DNA of 64,000 nucleotides from Thalia democratica (Eukaryota): NCBI GenBank assembly GCA_965202585.1, contig OZ241829.1, positions 77,810,001-77,874,000 of the forward strand. Reading direction: 5' to 3'. The notes under the pieces were generated by a model that saw only the letters and a list, made by a program, of their open reading frames with translations, made no database searches and was not told the origin of the DNA. This document shows positions 1-58,497 of this stretch, piece by piece; within the stretch, counting starts at the first letter, position 1, and the number at the start of each line of letters is the position of its first letter. Both the position numbers and the translations under genes were made by a program.

Positions 1-1660
1 AAATAAACTTTAAAGTAGTTTTAGGCTACGTTTTCTCTATTGTCCTCATCAATCTCTTTTTATAATTTTTTTATAACTTGAACATAATTAAATGTAGTTT
101 ATTTAGTTTGTACATTATATCTTACTTAATGGTACTTTATGTTTAATATTGTTAATTTTGCTAACTGCGGGCTCTAGTTACCCTAAGTTACCCCCCCCAC
201 AAGTTACTTTTCAGCCAAAAACTTATCTTTATAAAAATGTGATAAGAAATTTTTAATGGTATTAGCTTACAACTAAGCTCATGATTTTAAAACTGCTAAG
301 TTTTATCAGGTTTTAGTGTTATTTTCATTTATAACAAAATGAAAATATATGCGATGAGGTAATATAATAATAAAGCAAAATTTTAAGATCATCTATACCC
401 TTATGCCTAACCAATCTTTTAAAAAATGTTTAATCTACACCGTAATCCCTAACCCACCGTACCAAAACATACAAAAAATAAACCAAAAGAAAAGTTTACT
501 ACTTAAAACTTGAGTAAATAAAGTTTTATTCAATCAGTTAAAGCGATCTTAGGTCTGCAGCCGACGCGTTAGTTTGTATATATTTAGTCTTTATATCGTA
601 ATGATTAATAATTGACCTATAAACGTTTAGATAGAAAACGTACAGCGCAATTTAAATGTGCAAGCCCAAAGATCAAAACATGAATATAAACTATTTAAAA
701 AGTTATGCAAAATTAAACGAAAAATAATATAAATGCAGTTGAAGTTTACATACATCATTATTGTAGTATAAGTGTTGACAGTTTATAAAAGAATTCAAAA
801 TGATAAATGAACATTATTAAAACTTTATAAACTTAAACTATCTTTTTCAATAAACAAAATTTAGTAAAAGCTTGATGAAACATTCATTAAACTTTTAATC
901 AAACTACTATAAGTACTACGTATATTTTAAGCCTACAAGAAAACTGAAGATAGATTTAAAAACTGTGTAGGCTGACTATAATTATCAATAATTAAATATT
1001 TACGTTTAAATACTCAATATTTCTTATATCCTTTCTTAAAATTATTTTTTTAAGTGAAAGTATTTGTTTTTGGGGATTTTGTTTAAACAGTTATTTTTAA
1101 ATATTGTTGTTTTTAAATTGATGCGTTAGGCTTAATGTAGGTAAATAAAATCAAAACATTTCGAGGTACGTTTTGCAAGTTGCCAATATTTAGTATTTTA
1201 AATAGGTGATAGTCTCTATGTTTCGATTTTAAAACTGACAAACTATGAGTGATTTATAACTAATATTTAGTTAAACATATTATTAACTTTACACTTTTAA
1301 TCAGTAATATGTTTTTATAACATTTAATATTATTGTTTTCTCAGATAAACAGTACTATTTTTTTAGGTTTTTTAATGTAATTTTAATAATATTCATAGAG
1401 AAAATTTAAATTTTTAAGGATAAACAAATTATGTGTTTACCAAATTTTAGTTAAACATCAAAGACATATAATGTTTTAAGTCTAAGTATAAGTATTACTT
1501 ACTTAATTGTTACTTTAAACTTTGCAAGTTTTTATAATAAACGTTTATAAAAATTTATATAATTTTCACTCACCTGTTATGTAGTTTTGCTTAAAATATG
1601 TTACATTTAATTATAGTTTTTTTGTTTTTAGACTAATTTTATCCCTCCAAAATATCTATT

Positions 1661-2647
1661 ATGCATAAAAAAAGCAAGTCAACTCTTTTTAATGTGCAAA
1701 AAGTTTTGTAGAAAAACAGATATTGTAACCAAGAAAGCTTCAGTGTTTTGGCTTGTGGAGGAGAAGACATAAATGGAAAACTAACAAACGAAGTTTTAGA
1801 ATTGGAAATTCCTAGTTTTAAAGTAAATAAATTCCCTTCAATGGCAGAACCGCATTACTATTTACGTTTAGTTAATACCAAATCTGATATACTTGCTGTT
1901 AGTGATAGAGCAGTTTCAAATAAAATTTCAGATGAGTCAGTTGTATCTGTCGAAATTTATTCTAAAAAATCCAAAACTTGGACTCATCAATATTTAAAAA
2001 TGAAAGAACGGTCTTGTTATTGTATTACTTCATTCAAGAATAAAGTGTATTTAATTGGAGGATATAATCAAAACAAGGAAAAATATCTTAATTCGTGTTC
2101 TACTTATGATATCAATAGTAAAACATGGAATGAAATAGCAGATTTAAATGAAGCAAGAAGTTTTATGGCTTGTGCAGTTTTTGAAGGTAAAATTGTTGTC
2201 ACTGGAGGCTACATCTATACTCAAGGAAAGTTGAAATCAGTAGAAGCATATGATTATTACGAAAAAAAATGGAATTATTTACCAGATATGATCGAAGTAA
2301 AATTTAATCATGCTGCAGTTAGTATGGGTAATAAACTGTTTGTTATTGGTGGAGATAAAACTACAAGCTGTGAAGTATTTGAAAGTTATTTAAGAAAATT
2401 TACAAAAATTAATTCAGAAATTAAACTTTTTGATTGGGAAATATGCCATTTTTCTGCATTTAGCATCGGAAATAGCATTGTGGTATTTCAAAATTTCGAT
2501 TGTTATCTGACAGAAACAATCATTTACTTGTATGATACTGATAAAGAAAAATGGTTAAACATTCAGTGTGATTTTACTAAAAACATGTCATATTCAAGTT
2601 TTGTAAAGTACTACACTTTATTGTCAGAAACAATAGAAACACGTTAA
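1661..2647 (+). pseudogene. K1: Kelch-repeat beta-propeller gene with an early nonsense codon
   Basis: ATG 1661 (MHKKSKSTLFNVQKVL*) hits an in-frame TAG at 1709-1711 where paralogs read TAT GAA (YENRYC). The frame stays open from 1712 to 2647 with Kelch motifs CGG, LIGG, VTGG, VIGG, YD..W. A downstream in-frame ATG at 1841 exists. Confidence 0.85.
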
Positions 2648-2904
2648 ATAAAGTAGTAATAAAAGCTATTTTCATTTTGTTTGATATAAACTTTAACCTA
2701 CTTTCGTGACTATTTTTTTGATTTTAGCTATAGATGACTTTGTTTCTTTTATTTTTATTGAAATATTAGTTTATTTAAAAACATTAATTTTTGTTTTAAT
2801 GAAGCATATTTGATAAAAATGTTATTAGTTTATATTGACTTTTAGTTGGTTATCAGAGTAATTATTTATAATTTGTTTAATGTTAGCTTATTAGTTTAAG
2901 TTTT

Positions 2905-3970
2905 TTATAATGCTTTATTGTTACCCAGACTAGGAGCCTCACTGGTTTCCTTCGAAATTGCCTCGGTTTCAGTCTCAACAATCTCATCGGATTCCAGGTT
3001 AGCAGTAGTCTCGGAACAACTTATTTCGGTGCGCAACCGAGTTCTGGGTGCTTTCAGGACTAATGCCTTTTTTAAGGGTTTTAAGGACATAATTATATAA
3101 TTATGTAACTAAATATAATGAAAATAAATAATGTTGGTTTATTATGTACAAATACGCAATGACAGCTCACAATAAGTATAGACACTTAATGTTAACAAAT
3201 AGAAGTAAATTGTGCTCCGGATTCCCCCCTTGACGTGTCACTGGTCTCAGGTCGCTCAACTTCTGGCATTCGACGTTGGTCCGTCTCGTTTGCAGAATCT
3301 TGCTAAACGTTGCGTGGTCTGTTTTCCTTTCCTTTCCATAATCGGAGCGTGGTGATAAAATACGATATTAAATAGGCACGATGATATAAATATGTATAAA
3401 TATTACAATACAAATACAATAGTGAATAAATGCGGTGATATAAATATATATAAATATTACAATGCAAATACAATAGTGAGTATATATTATAATATGAATA
3501 TATATAAACAATACGATATAATTAAACAGTATGAACTTGTTCGTAGAAGTGTAGCTAAGGTTGACGCCCAGTCTGTGTGGGTTTACTTGCTGAGATGGAT
3601 GTTCACTTAAATCTGATTGAACGCTGTGACTCAATCGTGGAGTCCAGCTTAGAGTATTTGATGAATGAGTACTTCCAGTACTTAAATTCTCGATGCCACA
3701 TAATGCGTGGGCTTCTTCGATTAGGTGGTTGTTGAAATCTTATTGCTTAAAGATTGACGATGTTATTTCTTTTGCGGAGCAGAGTGTCGCTTCGTGCTTG
3801 TTTCGAGGTGGATTGCCCGCTTCATGCTCTGATCGGGCGTATTTATAGATTTTGAATTCTTTTTCTAGAATTTTCCATAAATCACGCGATCTCTCATTTG
3901 ATTCTCTCATTTTCCTGGACTTTGGACTGTAGATCACTTGATCTCTCATTTTATTCTCTCATTTTCCCTT
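2905..3970 (-). other. GC-richer, coding-like degenerate insert of unknown origin
   Basis: Composition is clearly more GC-rich than the flanks. Short minus-strand ORFs at 2905-3090, 3368-3634 and 3740-3949. The TAA at 3740 is GAA in the duplicate near 50151. No recognisable domain. Confidence 0.35.
3383..3515. repeat. 54-bp period minisatellite, about 2.5 units (duplicate near 49790-49925)
   Basis: GATATAAATATGTATAAATATTACAATACAAATACAATAGTG starts at 3383 and recurs at 3437; a third partial unit follows. Confidence 0.8.
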
Positions 3971-5160
3971 AGCCACACCCATTAACAAGCAATTTCCAGT
4001 TCAATCAAGAAATCAAAGACAACAATCATTTTAACTAGCACTTATTTTGTTTGTGAAAAATAGTTTTTTCTTTGGAAATCAGTTTTACTATATTTATTCA
4101 TTGTTTTTTTTTAAAGAAAAATATAATATCAAGTGAAAAACATTAATTCCTTTAAATTGTAAAAATTTGGACACAAGGCAAAACAAGATTTTGCACAAGT
4201 GTCCTACAGCTTTATTAAAAGTATATTTAGATGTAAATACAACTCAAACCAAATGAAGTTTGTGGTAAAAGAATTTTTTCTATAAAACAAAACTAAAATG
4301 TTTTTGGAATGAATTCTAAGCTACAAAAATTTTCGAGGCAACAGTTAGACAGATTGTTACTTGGTTTTACTTTCACATGTAGGATTTAAATTTAATACCA
4401 ATTATTTAGTCACAATATACATGTCACAATACATACAGTTTCGATATTTTTACAATTTTTTAAACTACAACTTTTTTTTATCACTTTTATTGTAAGAAAA
4501 GTGAAATTCCAACATCAATGGTACTACAGAAAATTATATTTAAAAAAATATAGTTTTTATTTCTTCTACTTCGGTTTCATAAAGTGCACTTTTTAATCTT
4601 TCAGTCTTTTTATATATCGTTAATTTGTCGTAGTCATTTACTAGCACCCCCATTTTATGATGACATCTGTATAAAATTCAGAGCTTAAAAAATATAACAA
4701 AGTATATTAAATCTTTTTAAATTTTGTTTGAGTTACACTTTTACCAATTCTTTTGACTATTTTTTTTGGTGATTTAATATAACTTACATTCATAAAATAC
4801 ATTTTTGTTTTTAAATAAGCCTGTTAACTTAAGAATACATAAAAAGTATTATCAGATACTAGCTTGTTGTTTTAGTATTCAAAGAGTTTTATCGAGTAAT
4901 TTAGTAGTTATTTGGTAATGTAAACAATATAAGTTTCTCATAGATTATTGTTTTATTAATAGTATTATTAAAAGTTATTTTGGTTTTTTAAGTTCAACAT
5001 AAACTAAATAATACTTGTATTAAATGATATGATATTCTAGAGTAAAAGTTTTGTCTTTAAACCTCAAATTTTCAAAGAAATTAATTAGAAAAATAAAGAC
5101 TTTGGATATATTAAAAAATGTGTATGATAAAACTCTTAAGGATAGTCTAGTTAAGTCTGC

Positions 5161-5584
5161 AAATTTAGATGGAACAAAATAAATAGTTTAAATGCAGCAA
5201 GAGGTAGTGCTAAATGTACAGTTTTTGAAGGTAAAATTGTTGTTACTGGGGGTGAAAATAATTGGTATGTATTAAAATCAGTAGAAGCATATGATCATCA
5301 TGAAAACAAATGGACTTGTTTACCTGATATGATTGAAGAAAGAAGTAATCATGCCGCAGTTAGTATGGGTAATAAATTGTTTATTATTGGTGGAGCATAT
5401 ACTACAAGTTGTGAAGTATTTGACAGTTTTTCAAGAAATTGGTAACAATATTTTGGTTTTGAAATTCTATTTTAGCGAAACAATAGTTTACTAATATGAT
5501 GTTGATAAAGCAAAATGGTTAAAAGTTCATTGTGATTTTACTAAAAACATGTTTGACGCCAGATATGTTAAGTACTACATCTAA
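5161..5584 (+). pseudogene. K2: 5'-truncated Kelch fragment with a 66-nt internal deletion
   Basis: Starts mid-gene (AAATTTAGATGGAACAAA, ..WNK..LNAARGSAKCTVFEGKIVVTGG). Lacks the 66 nt present at 51875-51940 in the duplicate. Ends YVKYYI-TAA at 5582-5584. Confidence 0.9.
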
Positions 5585-5854
5585 CTTTAATAAACTGTAG
5601 TAACGCGTGTTTACAATAAAAGGGAAAGCTCATCAAGTTTATTTCATTTCTTGTTTTTGTTTTGTTTAACATTTTGTTTTAAAATACTTTTTTACTCTCA
5701 TATTTGTAAAAGATTTTTTTTATTAATAACTTTCTTAGAACTTTTGTTAAAATAAAGCATATATAAAGAAAGATGTGGTATATGAAATTATCATTTTATA
5801 AAAGTGTTATAAGAGTTTTGTTGTATAACTAACAGTTCGTAATATAGTATATAA

Positions 5855-15820: not shown

Positions 15821-16781
15821 ATGTCTCAGATGCATGAAAAAAACAAGTCAAATCCTTTTCATGTGACAAAATTATTGTATGCAAACAGATATTGTAACCA
15901 AGAAGGCTTCAGTATTTTGATTTGTGGAGGAAGACAAACATATTAAAATACAAACAAATTTTATGAGTTTATAATACGGAGTTTGAAAGTAAATAAATTT
16001 TCTTTTATAGTAGAGCCATTTTATTATTTCTACTTAGCTACTATGAAATCTGATATTATATCTTTTGGTAATATTTGAGAACTAAATCAATTTTAAGATG
16101 AGTCAAATTTATTTCTTGAAATTTATTCTGAAAAAACTTAAACTTTGACTGGTGATTGTGTTGGAAAGAAATAACGATATTGTTACTGTGTCAGTTCATT
16201 CATGAGTGAATTGTATTTAATAGTTGGGTGAGTTGGAAGCAGTGGGAAAAGTGTTAGTTGGCCTCACAGATCACATCAGAAGAAGAAGATGGAATGAAAT
16301 AGCGGATTTAAATGTAACAAGAGATTGTGCTAGATTTACAGTTTTTGAAGGTAAAATTGTTGTTACTGGAGGTAACAAAAAATGGTCTACATTAGAATCA
16401 GTAGAGGCATATGACTATCATGAAAACAAATGGACATTTGTATCTGATATGATCGAAAAAAGATGTAATCATGCTGCAGTTAGTATGGGTAACAAAATGT
16501 TTGTTATTGGTGGATACTATAATAAAAGTTGTGAAGTATTTGATAGTTTTCCAAGAAAATTCACGAAAGTTAACTCAGAAGTTTAAGTTCGCAATTTAGA
16601 AAAGCAATACTTTGATGCTTTCAGCATTGGCAATAATATTGTGATTTTTCAAGGTTTTAGAAAATTTCTGACTAAAACAGTTGTTTACTTATACGATGTT
16701 GAAAAAGAAAAATGGCTTAACAAACAATACGGTTTAACTAAAGGCTTGTTTGATTTAAGTTATGTGAAGTACTTTACCTAA
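15821..16781 (+). pseudogene. K5: Kelch pseudogene (closest paralog K13)
   Basis: MSQMHEKNKSNPFHVTKLLYANRYCNQEGF start, then several stops and frameshifts in 15960-16225. ORF fragment 16224-16586; ends YVKYFT-TAA at 16779-16781. Confidence 0.9.
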
Positions 16782-25553: not shown

Positions 25554-25820
25554 NNNNNNNNNNNNNNNNNNNNNNNNNNNNNNNNNNNNNNNNNNNNNNN
25601 NNNNNNNNNNNNNNNNNNNNNNNNNNNNNNNNNNNNNNNNNNNNNNNNNNNNNNNNNNNNNNNNNNNNNNNNNNNNNNNNNNNNNNNNNNNNNNNNNNNN
25701 NNNNNNNNNNNNNNNNNNNNNNNNNNNNNNNNNNNNNNNNNNNNNNNNNNNNNNNNNNNNNNNNNNNNNNNNNNNNNNNNNNNNNNNNNNNNNNNNNNNN
25801 NNNNNNNNNNNNNNNNNNNN
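25554..25820. other. Assembly gap (267 N)
   Basis: Run of N characters. Confidence 1.
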
Positions 25821-26338
25821 NATTTGTGTTGTTCTTTGATTTTTAAACTAAACTAAAATTTAAATTTTGCCACAAATTCAAACCTAGTAATATAAGTTAA
25901 TTTGTTATTTTTTTAGGTAAAAAATTCGTTTTAACTATAAGTTTTTTTATATAAAGCATTTAAGCGGGATTTCAAAATTTCATAGTAATTAAAAGCGCAA
26001 GATTGTTATATTTTTAATAACTACGTCACAATTAAAATAAGCTACATTAAATTCAATTCAATTTTAAGCTCACTTTATTAATTATATTTTTGCTTAAGCA
26101 ATGTTTACTCTGTAAATTAACTAGAAGTAAAAAAAGGCTACATACAGCTTTTATTATTATTGTTTTTATATCGATTTTAAAACTTAGCTAAAATTTAAAC
26201 TTCACCTAAAACTCAGTCTTAATATTAAAATTTAATTTGTTAAGTTTCTTAAGTAAAAATTTTGAGTAAAAGTTTGGTTTTATTCAAATTTAATTGTTTA
26301 AATGCTATTTTTCATGACTGTCACATATCTTTTTAAGA

Positions 26339-32573: not shown

Positions 32574-33536
32574 ATGATGCATGAAAACAGCAACTCAATT
32601 CCTTTTCAAGTACCAAAAGTTATGTATGAAAACAGATACTGTAACCAAGAAGGCTTCAGTATCTTAGTTTGTGGAGGAAAAGACGAAAACGAAGATATGA
32701 CAAACGAAGTTTTAGAATTAGAAATACCTAGTTTTAAAGTGAATAAATTTCCTTCAGTGGTGAAACCACATTTATTTTTCTGTTTATCGACTATCAATTC
32801 TGATATACTTGCTATTGGTAATACTAAAGAACTAGAAGAGTTTTTAGATGAACGATATCTATTTCTAGAAGTTTATTCTGGAAAAACTAAAACTTGGACT
32901 CATAAGTATGTCAAAAATGATAAAAAGCTTCATTGTATTAGTTCATTTAGTTGTGTAAGTTCATTTAGGTGTAAGTTGTATTTAATTGGTGGTTGGAACA
33001 GTAGTTTGTGCTACATTTACGATATTAATAAATTTACATGGAACAAAATAACAAATTTAAATGCAGCAAGAAGTAGTGCTAAATGTACAGTTTTTGAAGG
33101 TAAAATTGTTGTTACTGGGGGCTACTACTATCCTCAAGGAGAATTAAAATCAGTAGAAGCATATGATTATTATGAAAATAAATGGACTTGTTTACCTGAT
33201 ATGATTGAAAAAAGAAGTGATCATGCTGCAGTTAGTATGGGTAATAAAATGTTTGTTATTGGTGGAGCATATACTATAAATTGTGAAGTATTTGATAATT
33301 ATTCAAGAAATTTTACAAATATTTGTTCAGAAATTTATCCTGATGAAGAAAAATGTTTGTTTGATGCATTTAGCATTGGTAAGAATATTGTGGTTTTTAA
33401 AACCTTGAAATACTATTTAAGCGAAACAATAGTTTACTTATACGATGTTGATAAAGCAAAATGGCTAAATGTTCAGTGTGATTTTACTAAACATATGCTT
33501 AGATCAGATTATGTTAAGTACTACACTTTACTTTAA
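32574..33536 (+). CDS. K8: intact Kelch-only beta-propeller protein, about 320 aa
   Basis: First ATG at 32574 (the ORF track's GTG at 32568 is not a likely eukaryotic start). Open frame with Kelch motifs to YVKYYTLL*. Confidence 0.9.
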   Translation: MMHENSNSIPFQVPKVMYENRYCNQEGFSILVCGGKDENEDMTNEVLELEIPSFKVNKFPSVVKPHLFFCLSTINSDILAIGNTKELEEFLDERYLFLEVYSGKTKTWTHKYVKNDKKLHCISSFSCVSSFRCKLYLIGGWNSSLCYIYDINKFTWNKITNLNAARSSAKCTVFEGKIVVTGGYYYPQGELKSVEAYDYYENKWTCLPDMIEKRSDHAAVSMGNKMFVIGGAYTINCEVFDNYSRNFTNICSEIYPDEEKCLFDAFSIGKNIVVFKTLKYYLSETIVYLYDVDKAKWLNVQCDFTKHMLRSDYVKYYTLL

Positions 33537-46200: not shown

Positions 46201-48074
46201 TAAATCATTTTCGCAGTTTTAGCTTTGATAACGCATTTAAATTTGTTTACTTTTAGTTTTATCAGTCTGATACTTGAGTCAGAGTGAGTTTTAAAAATAC
46301 TTGTTATTAATAAGTAAAGTTGTGGTTTTGGTCTTAATGCACTCACTATCTGTCTAAACAACTAATATTTTATGCATAGTTATTTAACTACTTAACTATT
46401 ACTTAGCATCGTAACAAATAAACTTTAAAGTAGTCTTAGACTACGTTTTCTTTATTGTCCTCATCAATCTCTTTTTATAATTATAACTTGAACATAGTTA
46501 AATGTAATTTATTTAGTTTATACAACATATCTTACTTAATGGTACTTTATGTTTAATATTGTTAATTTTGCTAACTGCGGGATCTAGTTACCCTAAGATA
46601 CCTTCCCCCCACAAGTTACTTTTAAGCCAAAAACTTATCTTTATATAAATTTGATAAGAAATTTTTAATGGTATTAGCTAACAACTAAGCTCATGATTAA
46701 AAAACTGCTAAGTTTTATTAGATTTTAGTGTTATTTTTATTTATAACAGAATGAAAATATATGCGATGAGGTAATATGATAATAAAGCAAAATTTTAAGA
46801 TCATCTATACCATTATGCCTAACCAATCTTTTAAAAAATGTTTAATCTACACCGTAATCCCTAACCCACCGTACCAAAACAAAGAAAAAATAAACCGAAA
46901 AAAAAGTTTTACTACTTAAAACTTGAAATAAATAAAGTTTTATTCAATCAGTTAAAGCGACCTTAGGTCTGCAGCCGGCGCGTTAGTTTGTATATATTTA
47001 GTCTTTATATCGTAATGATTAATAATTGACCTATAAACGTTTAGATAGAAAACGTACAGCGCAATTTTAATGTGCAAGCCCAAAGATCAAAACATGAATA
47101 TAAACTATTTAAAAAGTTATGCAAAATTAAGCGAAAAATAATATAAATGCAGTTAACGTTTACATACATCATTATTGTAGTATAAGTGTTGACAGTTTAT
47201 AAAAAAAATTCTAAATGATAAATGAACATTAATAAAACTTTATAATCTTAAACTATCTTTTTCATTAAACAAAATTTGGTAAAAGCTTGATGAAACATTC
47301 ATAAAACTTTTAATCAAACTACTATAAGTACTACGTATATTTTAAGCCTACAAGAAAACTGAAGATAGATTTAAAAACTGTGTAGGCTGACTATAATTAT
47401 CAATAATTAAATATTTACGTTTAAATACTCAATATTTCTTATATCCTTTCTTAAAATTATTTTTTTAAGTGAAAGTATTTGTTTTTGGGGATTTTGTTTA
47501 AACAGTTATTTTTAAATATTGTTGTTTTTAAATTGATGCGTTAGGCTTAATGTAAATAAATAAAATAAAATAAATTCGAGGTACGTTTTGCCAGTTGCCA
47601 GTATTTAGTATCTAAATTAGGTGATAGTCTCTATGTTTCGATTTTAAAACTGACAAACTATGAGTGATTTATAACTAATATTTAGTTAAACATATTATTA
47701 ACTTTACACTTTTAATCAGTAATATGTTTTTATAACATTTAATTTTATTGTTTTCTCAAAAAAACAGTACTATTTTTTTAGGTTTTTTAATGTAACTTTA
47801 ATAATATTCATAGAGAAAATTTAAATTTTTAAGGATGAACAAAATATGTGTTTACCAAATTTTAGTTAAACATCAAAGACATATAATGTTTTAAGTCTAA
47901 GTATAAGTATTACTTACTTAATTGTTACTTTAAACTTTGCAAGTTTTTATAATAAACGTTTATAAATAAATTTATAATTTTCATTCACCTGTTATGTAGT
48001 TTTGCTTAAAATATGTTACATTTAATTAAAGTTTTTTGTTTTTAGACTAATTTTATCCCTGCAAAATATCTATT

Positions 48075-49055
48075 ATGCATAAAAAAAGCAAGTCAACTCT
48101 TTTTAATGTGCCAAAAGTTTTGTATGAAAACAGATATTGTAACCATGAAAGCTTCAGTGTTTTGGCTTGTGGAGGAGAAGACAAAAATGGAAAACTAACA
48201 AACAAAGTTTTAGAATTGGAAATTCCTAGTTTTAAAGTAAATTCCCTTCAATGGCAGAACCGCATTACTATTTACGTTTAGTTAATACCAAATCTGATAT
48301 ACTTGCTGTTAGTGATAGAGCAGTTTCAAATAAAATTTCAGATGAGTCAGTTGTATCTGTTGAAATTTATTCTAAAAAATCCAAAACTTGGACTCATCAA
48401 TATTTGAAAATGAAAGAACGGTCTTGTTATTGTATTACTTCATTCAAGAATAAAGTGTGTTTAATTGGAGGATATAATCAAAACAAGGAGAAATATCTTA
48501 ATTCGTGTTCTACTTATGATATCAATAGTAAAACATGGAATGAAATAGCAGATTTAAATGAAGCAAGAGGTTTTACGGCTTGTGCAGTTTTTGAAGGTAA
48601 AATTGTTGTTACTGGTGGCTACATCTATACTCAAGGAAAGTTGAAATCAGTAGAAGCATATGATTTTACGAAAAAAATGGAATTATTTACCTGATATGAT
48701 CGAAGTAAAATTTAATCATGCTGCAGTTAGTATGGGTAATAAACTGTTTGTTATTGGAGGAGATAAAACTACAAGCTGTGAAGTATTTGAAAGTTATTTA
48801 AGAAAGTTTACAAAAATTAATTCAGAAATTAAACTTTTTGATTGGGAAATATGCCATTTTTCTGCATTTAGCATCGGAAATAGCATTGTGGTATTTCAAA
48901 ATTTCGAAAGTTATCTGACAGAAACAATCATTTACTTGTATGATATTGATAAAGAAAAATGGTTAAACATTCAGTGTGATTTTACTAAAAACATGTCATA
49001 TTCAAGTTTTGTAAAGTACTACACTTTATTGTCAGAAACTATAGAAACACGTTAA
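48075..49055 (+). pseudogene. K11: Kelch pseudogene, near-identical to K1, with two frameshifts
   Basis: 4-nt deletion near 48240 (GTAAATTCCC vs GTAAATAAATTCCC) and net 2-nt loss near 48665-48678, giving ORF fragments 48075-48281, 48251-48694 and 48660-49055. Confidence 0.9.
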
Positions 49056-49309
49056 ATAAAGTAGTAATAAAAGCTATTTTCATTTTGTTTCATATAAACT
49101 TTAACCTACTTTCGTGACTATTTTTTTGATTTTAGCTTTAGATGACTTTGTTTCTTTTATTTTTTTTGAAATATTAGTTTATTTAAAAACATTAGTTTTT
49201 GTTTTAATAACGCATATTTAATAAAAATGTTATTAGTTTATATTGACTTATAGTTGGTTATCAGAGTAATTATTTATAATTTGTTTAATGTTAGCTTATC
49301 AGATTAATT

Positions 49310-50400
49310 TTTTATAATGCTTTATTGTTACCCAGACTAGGAGCCTCACTGGTTTCTTTCGAAATTGCCTCGGTTTCAGTCTCAACAATCTCATCGGATT
49401 CCAGGTTAGCAGTAGTCTCGGAACAACTTATTTCGGTGCGCGACCGAGTTCTGGGTGCTTTCAGGACTAATGCCTTTTTTAAGGGTTTTAAGGACGTAAT
49501 TAAATAATTATTTAACTAAACATAATGAAAATAAATAATGTTGGTTTATTATGTACAAATACGCAATGACAGCTCACAATAAGTATAGACACTTTATGTT
49601 AACAAATAGAAGGAAAATGTGCTTCGGATTCCCCCCTTGACACGTCACTGGTCTCAGGTCGCTCAGCTTCTGGCATTCGACGTTGGTCCGTCTCGTTTGC
49701 AGAATCTTGCTAAACGTTGCGTGGTCTGTTTTCCTTTCCTTTCCGTAATCGGAGCGTGGTGATAAAATACGATATTAAATAGGCACGATGATATAAATAT
49801 GTATAAATATTACAATACAAGTACAATAGTGAATAAATGCGGTGATATAAATATATTTAAATATTACAATGCAAATACAATAGTGAGTATATATGATAAT
49901 ATGAATATATATAAACAATACGATAGAATTAAACAGTATGAAAGCAACTTGTTCGTAGAAGTGTAGCTAAGGTTGACGCCCAGTCTGTGTGGGTTTACTT
50001 GCGGAGATAGTTGTTCACTTTAATCTGATTGAACGCTGTGACTCAATCGTGGAGTCCAGCTTAGAGTATTTGATGAAAGAGTACTTCCAGTACTTAAATT
50101 CTCGATTCCACAGAATGCGTGGGCTTCTTCGATTAGGTGGTTGTTGAAATCTTCTTGCTTGAAGATTGACGATGTTACTTCTTTTGCGGAGCAGAGTGTC
50201 GCTTCGTGCTTGTTTCGAGGTGGATTGCCCGCTTCATGCTCTGATCAGGCGTATTTATAGATTTTGAATTCTTTTTCTAGAATTTTCCATAAATCACACG
50301 ATCTCTTATTTGATTCTCTCATTTTCCTGGACTTTGGACGGTAGATCACTTGATCTCACATTTTATTTTCTCATTTTCAATTAGCCACACCCATTAACAA
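49310..50400 (-). other. Duplicate of the GC-richer coding-like insert at 2905-3970
   Basis: Near-identical sequence; stop codons fall at different positions than in copy A. Confidence 0.35.
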
Positions 50401-51592
50401 GCAATTTCCAGTTCAACCAAGAAATCAAAGACAACAATCATTTTAACTAGCACTTATTTTGTTTGTGACAAATAGTTTTTTCTTTGGAAATCAGTTTTAC
50501 TATATTTATTCATTGTTTTTTTTTAAAGAAAAATATAATATCAAGTGAAAAAAATTAATTCCTTTAAATTATAAAAATTTGGACACAAGGCAAAATTAGA
50601 TTTTGCACAAGTGTCCTACAGCTTTATTAAAAGTATATTTAGATGTAAATACAACTCATACCAAATGAAGTTTGTGGTATAAGAATTTTTTCTATAAAAC
50701 AAAATTAAAATGTTTCTAGAATGAAGTTTTAGCTACAAAAATTTTCGAGGCCTATAGTTAGATAGATTGTTACTTAGTTTTACCTTCACATGTAGGATTT
50801 AAATTTAATACTAATTATTTAGTCGTAAGTTTTTAACATTGAGTAAAATACTTATGTCGTAATACATACAGTTTCGATATTTTTACAATTTTTTAAACTA
50901 CAACTTTTTTTTATCACTTTTATTGTAAGAAAAGTGAAATTCCAACATCAATGGTACTGAAGAAAACTATATTAAAAAAACATTGTATTATTTCTTTTAC
51001 TTCGGTTTCATAAAGTGCAATTTTCAATCTTTCAGTCTTTTTATATATCGTTAATTTGTCGTAGTCATTTACTAGCACCCCCATTTTATCATGACATCTG
51101 TAAGAAATTCAGAGCTTAAAAAATATAACAAAATATAGTAAATCTTTTTAAGTTTTGATTGAGTTACACTTTTACCGATTTTTTTGACTATTTTATTTCT
51201 AGATAATTTAATTTCACTTACATTCATAAAATACCATCTTGTTTTTTAAAAAAACCTGTTAATTTAAGAATATATAAAAATGTTATCAGATACTAGCTTG
51301 TTATTTTAGTATTCAAAGAGTTTATCGAGTAATTTAGTAGTTATTTGGTAGTGTAAATAATATAAGTTTCTCATAGATTATTGTTTTATTAATAGTTTTA
51401 TTAAAAGTATTTTTAATTTTTTAACTTCAACATAAACTAAATAATACTTGTAGTATATGATATAATATTGTAAAGTAAAAGTTTCGTCTTTAAACCGAAA
51501 ATTTTCAAAATAATGAATCAGAAAATAAAGACTTTGAATATGTTAAAACATATGAATGAGAAAACCCTTAAGGATAGTCTGTTTAAGTCTGC

Positions 51593-52084
51593 AAATTTAG
51601 ATGGAACAAAATAAATAGTTTAAATGCAGCAAGAGGTAGTGCTCAATGTACAGTTTTTGAAGGTGAAATTGTTGTTACTGGGGGCTACTACTATCCTCAA
51701 GGAGAATTGAAATCAGTAGAGGCATATGACTATTATGAAAACAAACGGACAATTGTATCTGGTATGGTCGAAAAAAGATGTAATTATGCTGCAGTTAGTA
51801 TGGGTAATAAAATGTTTGTTATTGGTGGAGAACATACAACAAATTGTGAAGTATTTGATAGTTTTTCAACAATTTTCACAAATATTTGTTTAGAAATTTA
51901 TCCTGATGAAGAAAAATGTTTGTTCGGTGCATTTAGCATTGGTAACAATATTTTGGTTTTTGAAATTCTATTTTAGCAAACAAAAGTTTACTAATATGAT
52001 GTTGATAAAGCAAAATGGCTAAAAGTTCATTGTGATTTTACTAAAAACAAATTTGACGCCAGATATGTTAAGTATTACATCTAA
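51593..52084 (+). pseudogene. K12: 5'-truncated Kelch fragment (duplicate of K2; K8-like)
   Basis: Same truncation junction as K2 (AAGTCTGC|AAATTTAGATGGAAC). Carries GGYYYPQGELKSVEAY as in K8 and ends TAA at 52082-52084. The 3' flank to about 53225 is homologous to the K8 flank 33540-34625. Confidence 0.9.
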
Positions 52085-55000
52085 CTTTAATAAATTATAG
52101 TAACGCGTGTTTTACAATAAAAGAGAAAGTTAACCAAGTTTATTTCATTTATTGTTTTTGTTTTGTTTAACATTTTGTTTTAAAATACTTTGTTACTCTC
52201 ATTATTGTAAAAGATAATTTTTATTTATAACTTTGTTAGAACTTTTGTTACAATAAAGCATTTATAAAGGAAGAGGTGGTATATGAAATTATAATTTTAT
52301 AAAAGTGTTGAAAGAGTTTTGTTGTATAACTAACAGTTCGTAATATAGTATATAATTATATTGATCTTAAGTTATTTCTAATGATTGCATTGCATAAATT
52401 ATAATATGATGTAAGTACATGAATGTAAGTTTCTTATCACATTATTTTTTCATTAATTTTTAAAGGATATTCAGTTTTTTAAGTGCAAGATAACCAAAAT
52501 GTAAGTATGTAAAAATTTATTAAAGTTTAAATAGTTTAAATGTAGTTTAAATAGTTTTAAAATATAAATATATCTATTTAAAATAACGAGCTAATAAATA
52601 TATGTTATCAAAAAAAGTAAATCATCAAAAAGTTATTAGTATTAATACTGTACAGCTTTTTTACAAGTTTTAAATTTAATGCTATGATTTCTAATTCAAT
52701 TTGAGTCTTTTTTAAACCGCATATGTTTAAATTATTCAAAAATGCTTTTTATTTAAAATTTGTAGCGATTTATTCAAAAATTTAAATCGTAAGTTCTCTA
52801 AATGTGTAAAAACAGTAAGACTGTTAGGTTAAATATCGGTTTTAAATTTTTCACATATAATTTATATTTCAAAATTTCCACAGACACAATGATAATTTGC
52901 ATCAAACTAAATATTTTTTTGCAAGTTTGGAATAATAACTTATTAAAACCGAAAAAGTGTGATATAAGTAAACTATCGATACTCATGAAGAAGTTATTTA
53001 GAATTTACATTTGGTCAGGACTTCACCAACAACAGTTTGCAATGATTTTAAACATAAGTTTTAAACTATGACTTACGTACAGTTTGCTGTTTAAACATTT
53101 AACATTACAAAAAATTATTATATTTGATTTTGATTTTTTATTCTACAGAATTATAGGGAATAAAAGGTTAGCATCTGTTAGGCTTACTTAACTTTACACA
53201 GAGGTATGCATTTCATAAGCTGTTAAGATATGTGCTCTAGTTGTAAGTTCAAACAGTTTATAGTAAAACAAATTGTATAAGTTTGTCTGTTTATTTATTC
53301 ACTTAAACGTGAAGTAATTATTTCTTTATAAAGTTTAAAATTACTAATACAGTAGGGACGTAAGAAAGGTACGCAGTTTAAAAGGTATGCACTTGCGTAA
53401 AGTACGCACTAAAGTAGGCAAATGAATGCGACATAAGATGATTGTAAAAAATTCAAATGAAGTTTAAAAAGCTTAAATTTATTCTTTATATAGTTTATAG
53501 ATAAAAGTCTCATATTTTTAAAAATCGAGCAACTCTTTAACAAACTAAAGGAGACAGTATTTTTCATAAAAATGAGTTTATTTCAGCTGTATTTGATGCG
53601 AAAAATATAAAATTTGTTCAAATCTGTAAGACACCTTTTTATTGCTTCAAGGTTTGTACCTTCAAGGTTATTATACATTTAGAATTTCTATTTACTAAAC
53701 GTCGTTATGTAATCATTTACCTTTTCTTTACATGTAACCGTATTTTTATTGTTAAAAACCGTTTTTCTTAAACTGGAGAAAACCTTTTTCCATAATACAA
53801 GTTGGTAGAGGTCATTATCTAGACTTGACATTAACCAATTCAATGATGTTTTTTTAAGAAGTTAATCTGATTGTAATCAAAATTTAAATTTCTGTAGGCT
53901 ACTGGTTCGGGGGGATCGATCAAATATGATAAGAAACAAATATCTTATATTTGTCTTTTTAAACTCATTCAAGTCCCTAGCAAGTTGGCTGCTACTAGGC
54001 CTAAATAAATTATGTCCATAATAACTAGTAAACTTTGTTTGTGTATTAAATTTAAATTCTTAATAATTTAAAACTAATTTTGGGTCACCATCTACTTAAC
54101 GTAGAAATTTTAACAAAGGTAGCTGCTCAGATGCCGGTGTCATCATGAAAAATTTTACAATATGTGTTTGGTTATATTTGCAACGGGGGCCTGTCAACTA
54201 ACTGACTTGACGCGCTAATATAACGTAATTCTAAGATAGTTCTTAAGCTAGTTTGTACCGATCTTGTTAACTAATAAAGCAGGTTTGTAAACTGTTAATT
54301 GAACTTAAATTATTATTTTGATTAGTTATATAAGTGGTTGTTAAACCTTCACTACTGTTTATGCAAATAGGATTATAAAGCTGTTAGATAATTAAGCTAT
54401 TGTTTATTGTAGTAGATATATAAGAGGGGAATTAGATAAGATATATATAAGTAGGTTGTTAGAATGCTTAAACTACTGGTATAACTAAAGTCTATAAGTT
54501 TAAAGTATATTTACAATGAATATATGTGCTAAAAAATACAAAATGTGTTAGCAAAATAATACAAAACAGTGTACTTCATCTTAACAGCTCTTCAGTTCTG
54601 TAAAATAAAGATATTATTACTAGCGGGAGTATAAATGTAAAAGCTCGCGAGAAGATAAAACTCCTTAAGCAAAGGTAAAACCTAAAGTCAAACTTATGCA
54701 AGTTCATTGCTTATAAGATAAGATTTGACGGAAGATAATGAAAGAAGATGAAATTCTGCTAACTGTAGCAGAGCTGTACAACTGTATAACATAGTATAGT
54801 ACATATGATTTCAATTTATTTATTTAAGTACAATTTTCCAAAATTTTACTCTTTGTATAAAGTATATCACGATACATATTTTATATTTACATATTCTTAA
54901 TTAGCTCGGATTGTTTTTTGTGGGATGCGTCTAGTTGAAACATTCCTTCAGAAGTTTTTAATTAAAAATCAAAATTTCAATTTTAATTTTTTCCGTATAT

Positions 55001-57535: not shown

Positions 57536-58497
57536 ATGCATGAAAAAAACAAGTCAATTCCTTTTCATGTGCCAAAATATTTGTATGAAAACAGATATTG
57601 TAACCAAGAAGGCTTCAGTATTTTGATTTGTGGAGGAAAAGACAAAAATAAAAAAATACAAACGAAGCTATAGAGTTGGAAATACCTAGTATGAATGTTA
57701 ATGAATTCCCTTCAATGGTAGAACTGCATTATTATTTCTACTTAGCTACTATTAAATCTGATATTACAGCTTTTGTGTTAGTCCAGAACTAAATTGCTTT
57801 TTAAATGAGTTCAATTTATTTCTTGAAATTTATTCTGGAAAAACAAAAACTTGGACTAATCACATTGTTGGAAAGAAAAAACGGTATTGCTATTGTGTCA
57901 GTTCATTCATGAGTGAATTGTATTTAATAGGAGGGTGGGTCGGAAGCAGTGGGCAAAGTGTTAGTTGGTCTCACAGATACGACATCAGAAGAAGAATATG
58001 GAATGAAATATCAGATTTAAATGTAGCAAGAGATATTGCTAAATGTAAAGTTTTTGAAGGTAAAATTGTTGTTACAGGAAGTAACAAAAGTTGGTCTACA
58101 TTAAAAACAGTAGAGGTATATGACTATCATGAAAACAAATGGACATTTGTATCTGATATGATCGAAAAAAGATGTAATCATGCTGCAGTTAGTATGGGTA
58201 AAAAAATGTTTGTTATTGGTGGATACTATAATACAAGCTGCGAAGTATTTGATAGTTTTTCAAGAAAGTTCACAAAAGTTTACTCAGAAATTAAAGTTCG
58301 CAATTTAGAAAAGCAGTAATTTAATGCTTTCAGCATTGGCAATAATATTGTGATATTTCAAAGTTTTAGAAAACCTTACATTTCTTACAGAAATAGTTGT
58401 TTACTTAAACGATGTTGAAAAACAAAAATGGCTAAACAAACAATATGGTTTTACTAAATACTTTTTTAATTTAAGTTATGTGAAGTACTTTACCTAA
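57536..58497 (+). pseudogene. K13: Kelch pseudogene (paralog of K5)
   Basis: ATG 57536 (MHEKNKSIPFHVPKYLYENRYC); frameshift and stops near 57780-57805; stop at 58317-58319; ends YVKYFT-TAA at 58495-58497. Confidence 0.9.

Follow-up and report, generated by a model that had tools for sequence, protein, structure and literature searches.

Probable short-tract gene conversion between paralogs in two truncated kelch pseudogenes of a tandem array

Introduction

Two truncated kelch pseudogenes, here K2 and K12, lie in the same 64-kb stretch of DNA (the window) and differ sharply in their middle part: between positions 5245 and 5440, 39 of 196 sites (19.9%) are different, a clear excess over the immediate flanks (Fisher p=1e-9). 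The first-pass annotation had drawn attention to this difference, quoting peptides and DNA motifs that are indeed found in K2 and K12 where they were said to lie, and had proposed that short-tract ectopic conversion produced a single mosaic patch in near-identical duplicates. The locus thus raises the questions of whether the patch has one origin, which of the two copies changed, and from what kind of gene the foreign sequence came.

The Kelch-Only Gene Array

The window is located at C5:77.81 Mb of an 802-Mb genome and has a G+C content of 24%. In it are 14 copies of a kelch-only gene that has no introns and encodes 314-322 amino acids; four of these copies (K6, K7, K8, and K10) are intact. 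A fragment-query search of the genome returned more than 1200-1500 first-look candidates, mostly at C5:77.2-79.2 Mb, where they form a kelch-only array; the family is also found on C4 and on the unplaced contigs C399, C816, C1155, and C797. The paralogs number in the hundreds, at 80-93% identity. The family alignment comprises 85 loci, with 57 unique 3' halves, drawn from more than 1000 family copies. Among the sampled copies there are 18 unique full-length open frames, and about one-third have intact frames. A run of 268 Ns, representing an assembly gap or masked sequence, occupies window positions 25554-25821.

Kelch_1 repeats (PF01344) are recognized in K7 (96 bits) and K8 (78 bits) as well as in the K2 (68 bits) and K12 (52 bits) fragments, all above the gathering cut-off of 20.1 bits. 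In Pfam, the window proteins of 314-320 amino acids matched kelch models only, with no match to BTB or BACK domains. They resemble the BTB-BACK-Kelch (KLHL) adaptors in having Kelch_1 repeats that form a propeller, but differ from these in having neither BTB nor BACK, in being intronless, and in occurring as hundreds of tandem copies; distant database relatives, at about 35% identity to the window genes, do carry BACK. The closest database proteins in a word-based protein search are ENA metagenome proteins of at most 64% identity. Small shares of the window sequence are also present in marine metagenome runs, and two runs of organism A contain it. Exact scans of metagenome contigs for the K2 and K12 tracts described below gave no matches.

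Truncated Copies Sharing One Junction

The copies that bear on the history of K2 and K12 are the following (window coordinates unless another location is given).

5161-5578, + strand: K2, kelch pseudogene of K8-like origin, truncated at the 5' end (first codon ~155)
51593-52078, + strand: K12, second truncated kelch pseudogene, with the same junction as K2
32577-33536, + strand: K8, intact, the gene in the window closest to the source lineage of the truncated fragment; shares YYYPQGE
C5:78.513 Mb: L062t, junction-bearing truncated copy (locus L062, C5:78511401-78515004)
C5:77.791 Mb: L063t, junction-bearing truncated copy (locus L063, C5:77789051-77792660)
Unplaced contig C399: C399t, junction-bearing truncated copy

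In K2 the upstream flank (...gtctgc) runs up to 5160 and K8-like sequence, from codon ~155, begins at 5161, which confirms the truncation junction that K2 and K12 had been said to have in common. The flank at 4560-5160 exists in about 12 genome copies, 6-7 of which run on into unrelated intergenic sequence; in five copies (K2, K12, L062t, L063t, and C399t) it is fused at the identical base to K8-like codon ~155. The use of one junction base in five copies indicates that the truncation arose once and was copied afterwards. In K8 the homology of the 3' flank extends to 33784, and the 3' flank at 5438-5854 is common to K2, K12, and C399t.

Read in the kelch frame, window positions 5170-5442 give ...GKIVVTGGENNWYVLKSVEAYDHHENKWTCLPDMIEERSNH... 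and positions 51596-51976 give ...GEIVVTGGYYYPQGELKSVEAYDYYENKRTIVSGMVEKRCNY..., respectively. Both fragments begin near codon 155 of a gene of roughly 315 codons, and both are without a start codon. Furthermore, K2 has a 65-bp deletion after 5437 (corresponding to 51873-51937 of K12), which causes a frameshift into a stop, and stops or frameshifts are also found downstream in K12, C399t, and L062t. K2 and K12 are therefore dead gene fragments, with their N-terminal blades lost and their frame disrupted.

Two of the additional junction-bearing copies are themselves chimeric. L063t is K10/K6-like from about position 5282 on (K2 coordinates), with a frame open to the natural stop, and L062t is L022/L023/L028-like near its 3' end; each has a different 3' flank. 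A simple recent pairing of K2 with K12 in this region was also considered and rejected: where the kelch columns are unconverted, the sister of K12 is the C399 copy, and in the 5' flank K12 is nearest to L062t and L063t.

Duplicated Blocks A and B

K2 and K12 are the right-hand parts of two larger duplicated blocks, with an overall identity of 94% (blastn and MAFFT). Block A continues past the left edge of the window.

1-5854, + strand: block A, with K1, a solo LTR, flank, and truncated K2 with its 3' flank (blastn and MAFFT against 46416-52355)
46416-52355, + strand: block B, with K11, a solo LTR, flank, and truncated K12 with its 3' flank (blastn and MAFFT)
4291-5160, + strand: 5' flank of K2, present in ~12 genome copies, 9.5% apart between K2 and K12

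Along the blocks, the divergence between the K2 and K12 copies (K2 coordinates) is distributed as follows.

1-4290 (K1/K11 and the 1291-bp insertion at 2920-4210): 3.34%
4291-5165: 9.54%
5166-5252: 2.3%
5253-5298: 37%, plus a 3-bp indel
5299-5350: 25%
5351-5437: 10.3%
5438-5854: 6.25%

The description of the blocks as near-identical thus holds for the left 4.3 kb (K1/K11 and the solo LTR, ~97% identity) but not for the immediate flanks of the patch, which are 90-94% identical. The step from 3.3% to 9.5% at about 4290 (50700 in block B) is abrupt (Fisher p=2e-13), and to the right of it other block copies are closer to K2 and to K12 than K2 and K12 are to each other. This points to a long-tract exchange, or to a duplication breakpoint within an older block; the duplicated block is itself a mosaic on a larger scale. 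Over the 5' flank at 4217-5160, K12 is closest to L062t and L063t, followed at a short distance by C399t, and not to K2. Moreover, a 40-bp cluster of changes apparently private to K12 (window 50960-51000; K2 coordinates 4526-4566) is shared with L063t only. The patchy sharing therefore extends to the non-coding flank, outside the coding homology. Several nominally significant triplets in our scan of the flank involve L073, whose middle segment is poorly aligned (22% divergence), and these are not relied on.

Two Adjacent Tracts of Opposite Polarity

To assign the changes to one copy or the other we used the three extra junction copies (L062t, L063t, and C399t) together with K8, in 5-copy and 57-copy alignments. 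The aligned sequences indicate that the apparent single patch consists of two independent tracts next to each other, K2 being the changed copy in one and K12 in the other.

5253-5296 (minimum) to 5251-5314 (maximum), + strand: K2 tract, 17 substitutions and a 3-bp indel, GENNW loop type
51734-51785 (core 51751-51769, maximum 51711-51807), + strand: K12 tract, K5/K13 signature at 5/5 consecutive core sites
16434-16457, + strand: donor-type signature ACATTTGTATCTGATATGATCGAA in K5
58143-58166, + strand: copy of the ACATTTGTATCTGATATGATCGAA signature in K13

The two tracts lie side by side, so that a direct comparison of K2 with K12 resembles one mosaic patch of 100-150 bp. The suggestion of a single patch was accordingly right as to mosaicism, but the patch has two components, the GENNWYVL loop of K2, to which no donor had been assigned, and the K5/K13-like stretch of K12.

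In the K2 tract, polarity is given by the loop peptide: YYYPQGE is found in four of the five junction copies and in K8, and GENNWYVL in K2 only. Across the loop segment K12 is identical to L062t (52/52) and nearly so to C399t (51/52). The YYYPQGE match between K12 and K8, which had been listed as part of the conversion pattern, is thus real but ancestral. The 3-bp indel in the K2 tract is a deletion, and all K2-tract states are common in GENNW-type paralogs; K2 agrees with the GENNW type in a run of 13 informative columns (three of them the 3-bp indel). The best match among the sampled copies is L073_355 (44/49), and the best in the genome covers 71 nt at 94% (C5:77595744). The core 32-mer of K2 is unique in the genome, the nearest 32-mers being three mismatches away.

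In the K12 tract the situation is reversed. Among the five junction copies and K8, the ...ACAATTGTATCTGGTATGGTC... stretch is found in K12 only, while the TGGAC(T/A)T(G/A)TTTA(C/T)CTGATATGATTGAA form is kept in K2, C399t, L062t, L063t, and K8. In the same way, the TGGACTTGTTTACCTGATATGATTGAA shared by K2 and K8 is a real match but no sign of conversion, since the K8-like TGGACTTGT...ATTGAA stretch is ancestral to the truncated lineage. It is the GTATCTG of K12, confirmed as a match to K5/K13, that belongs to the piece we take as converted. Five sites of the core distinguish K5/K13 from the inferred K12/C399 ancestor, and K12 shows the K5/K13 base at every one of them. The tract agrees with K5/K13 at 33 of 38 positions, and its sister C399t falls below the 28/38 that ends the list of the 12 best matches. 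Ten other copies in the genome carry the 24-nt K5/K13 signature, which sets the direction of transfer as into K12; the K12 version has three changes of its own. One of the ten is K13, the next downstream neighbour of K12 at a distance of 6.4 kb and on the same strand.

Both foreign stretches are internal, with recipient-type sites on either side (pattern P...P QQQQQ P...P in K12, and P, Q-run, P in K2). DNA and pattern searches of the whole assembly recovered no exact donor for either tract, the best matches being 92% of 79 nt for K12 and 94% of 71 nt for K2. Within 51734-51785 there are 5-6 K12-only changes against about 1.5 expected from the background (p about 0.005-0.02), none of them carried by any of the ten K5/K13-type copies; counted over the maximal bounds of 51711-51807, there are six K12-only changes in addition to the five donor-type core sites. 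A lost donor or error-prone (mutagenic) repair synthesis is a possible source of this excess.

Diversity in the family is highest (0.30-0.38) at 5255-5278, inside the K2 tract, in the loop that follows the GG doublet in kelch repeat 4. On either side of this peak lie the family's two most conserved blocks, 5225-5239 and 5279-5293 (diversity ~0.05). In kelch propellers, the residues following the GG doublet form the long B-C loop of a blade, and this loop contributes to the substrate face. The ends of both tracts fall in the family's most conserved blocks, which could have served as homology anchors.

Statistical Support and Phylogenetic Conflict

The clustering of changes was examined with an exact hypergeometric random-walk (3SEQ-type) test, in which one parent was the inferred K12/C399 ancestor. 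When K13 or K5 is taken as the other parent of K12, the 5/5 consecutive donor-type sites among 114-116 informative positions give p=7e-7 (4e-5 when corrected for 52 donors). For K2 with L073_355 the exact breakpoint p is 5.8e-9, also significant after correction for 52 candidate donors. Private changes are concentrated in both tracts, with 17 in 44 bp of K2 against 2.2 expected (p=2e-10) and 11 in 52 bp of K12 against 1.5 expected (p=6e-7).

Maximum likelihood trees of 26 copies tell the same story. Their partitions were picked after the tracts had been seen, so that we regard the exact tests as the primary evidence. In the unconverted columns the topology is (K2,(K12,C399t)), with K12 and C399t joined at 98/87 within a K8-like clade (98/97). 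In the K2-tract tree, K2 lies across a 100/97 split from K12, C399t, L062t, L063t, and K8, with K12, C399t, and L062t being identical over this partition, while in the K12-tract tree K12 groups with the mutually identical K5 and K13 (98/98). A single congruent tree, which would have spoken against mosaicism, was thus not obtained, the partition trees being in conflict at 98-100% support.

In an all-triplet scan of the family, leaving out L055 and L058 (partial rows with non-homologous 3' parts), 39 of the 55 copies sampled belong to a recombinant triplet that is significant after Bonferroni correction; the tracts measure 44-277 bp. The mosaicism of K2 and K12 is therefore the rule in this family and not an exception. 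Together with the chimeric structure of L062t and L063t, this bears out the earlier proposal of short-tract ectopic conversion among paralogs, pseudogenes included.

Read Support for the K12 Tract

We also examined Logan unitigs from two runs of one sample, which may be the assembled one, mapped to 50600-52900. Positions 51710-51803 are matched without a difference by a single 94-nt unitig (X3 record 12), which has a depth of 37.3 compared with 38-45 in neighbouring unique unitigs. The sequence of this unitig is unique in the assembly, and the unitig data list no variant letters inside the K12 tract. The K12 tract, including its private changes, thus exists in the reads at single-copy depth. 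The unitig stops short of the K12-specific flank variants, and so shows the existence of the sequence, not its placement.

Origin of the Tracts

Short-tract ectopic (interparalog) gene conversion in K2 and K12 is the best-supported explanation of these results, with a probability that we put at roughly 0.85. The shared junction, the polarity, the clustering of changes, the donor-type matches, the tree conflict, and the read support for K12 are direct observations, and from them we infer the repair mechanism, the timing, and which genes were the actual donors. In a K8-like kelch gene, a single deletion would have removed the first ~155 codons and joined the remainder to sequence that flanks a neighbouring gene downstream. 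The resulting unit would then have spread by copying through the multi-megabase tandem array of intronless kelch-propeller genes, to yield at least five copies. After their separation, each of the two window copies was probably patched once by non-reciprocal, homology-directed repair, with a different paralog as template. The simplest route would be synthesis-dependent strand annealing, in which a break in the dead copy is repaired from a nearby paralog and the short tract is resolved within conserved sequence. A GENNW-type gene would have given K2 its 44-64 bp, which cover the hypervariable post-GG loop of kelch repeat 4. The donor to K12 would have been a K5/K13-type gene, supplying 19-98 bp, probably close to 52 bp, immediately downstream of the site of the K2 tract. 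Because the recipients are dead, selection cannot account for the pattern.

Other origins have to be weighed against conversion. Reads of other paralogs misplaced on K2 or K12 during assembly or polishing might have written in a foreign patch, and a family of hundreds of paralogs at 80-93% identity, with tracts about as long as a short read, is a setting in which such an error could occur; in addition, the read support covers the K12 tract alone, through a unitig without a link to K12-specific flank variants. We nevertheless hold an artefact to be very improbable, given that the K12 tract and every one of its private changes lie within one 94-nt unitig at depth 37 whose sequence occurs nowhere else in the assembly, and that the genome-unique K2 core 32-mer, with its nearest relatives at three mismatches, was not pasted from any assembled paralog. 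Even more doubtful is an origin by clusters of untemplated mutations, through error-prone repair or local hypermutation, that came to resemble paralogs by chance. The 5-6 changes of the K12 tract absent from every K5/K13-type copy, and the location of the K2 tract on the family's most variable segment, would both be in line with it. Chance would, however, have had to supply the K5/K13 base at 5/5 differing sites of the K12 core, and the GENNW type in K2 over a run of 13 informative columns including the same 3-bp indel. The agreement of the loop between K12 and L062t (52/52) or C399t (51/52) shows that the loop is not hypermutable in these dead copies.

Unequal crossing-over, or duplication breakpoints inside the kelch homology, could produce chimeras with no conversion at all, and events of that kind would fit L063t and L062t, which change to K10/K6-like and L022/L023-like sequence, respectively, from mid-fragment to the end and have different 3' flanks. 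The step in K2-K12 divergence from 3.3% to 9.5% at about 4290 likewise suggests larger-scale exchange. For the tracts themselves, we judge crossing-over very unlikely: the foreign stretch is internal in K2 as in K12, with a return to the recipient type to its left and right, and the 3' flank at 5438-5854 is still the one common to K2, K12, and C399t. Crossing-over would need a second exchange within 100 bp of the first, and this would amount to conversion.

Comparison with Other Systems

Interlocus gene conversion takes place mainly above 80% identity, has mean tracts of 200-300 bp in yeast and rodents, and is recognized by GENECONV-type detection (PMC3924818). The K2 and K12 tracts resemble such events in tandem families in being internal patches nearest to another paralog, between array neighbours of more than 80% identity (PMC3924818). 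They are short, however (minimum 44 and 19 bp, maximum 64 and ~98 bp), in comparison with the reported means of 200-300 bp (PMC3924818), and they also depart from typical cases in that no surviving exact donor was recovered from the assembly and the K12 tract has excess changes of its own. Exchange of sequence involving dead copies is a further likeness, to the CYP21A2/CYP21A1P pair (PMC3843699) and to immunoglobulin V pseudogene conversion (PMC13183705). In the present case, in contrast, the pseudogenes K2 and K12 are recipients, with no sign of a donor role or of a programmed or somatic process.

The two tracts are a well-polarized new instance of a known process, in an uncharacterized and very large kelch family. 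The mechanism is an ordinary one, and no new mechanism is revealed by them. Their value lies in the extra junction-sharing copies, which reveal which copy changed in very short interparalog conversions. Copies in the kelch array do not evolve independently, and therefore family trees, dating, and orthology calls must allow for mosaicism. A more far-reaching and improbable reading is that the array is a diversifying recognition repertoire, in which variable loop cassettes between highly conserved anchors, the post-GG loop among them, move between hundreds of genes through conversions of very short tracts. The exchangeable pool could then include dead fragments like K2 and K12, and repair synthesis could add new point changes, at which the excess of K12-only changes in the K12 tract might hint. 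If true, the array would be comparable, in the germline and with propellers as its basis, to variable-gene families that are fed by pseudogenes.

Solo LTR of the Duplicated Blocks

The insertion upstream of the truncated copies provides an additional clue to the history of the blocks.

2920-4210, + strand: solo LTR, 1291 bp, ~6 bp of target duplicated (6-bp overlap at the join)
49327-50622: twin of the solo LTR in block B

Among the sampled block copies, only those of K2 and K12 have this insertion, which was found in none of the 10 other flank copies. The solo LTR family has at least 373 candidates in the genome, at 90-97% identity, many of them same-strand pairs 12.4 kb apart, a spacing that implies an LTR element of roughly 13.7 kb, active around the time of the block duplication.
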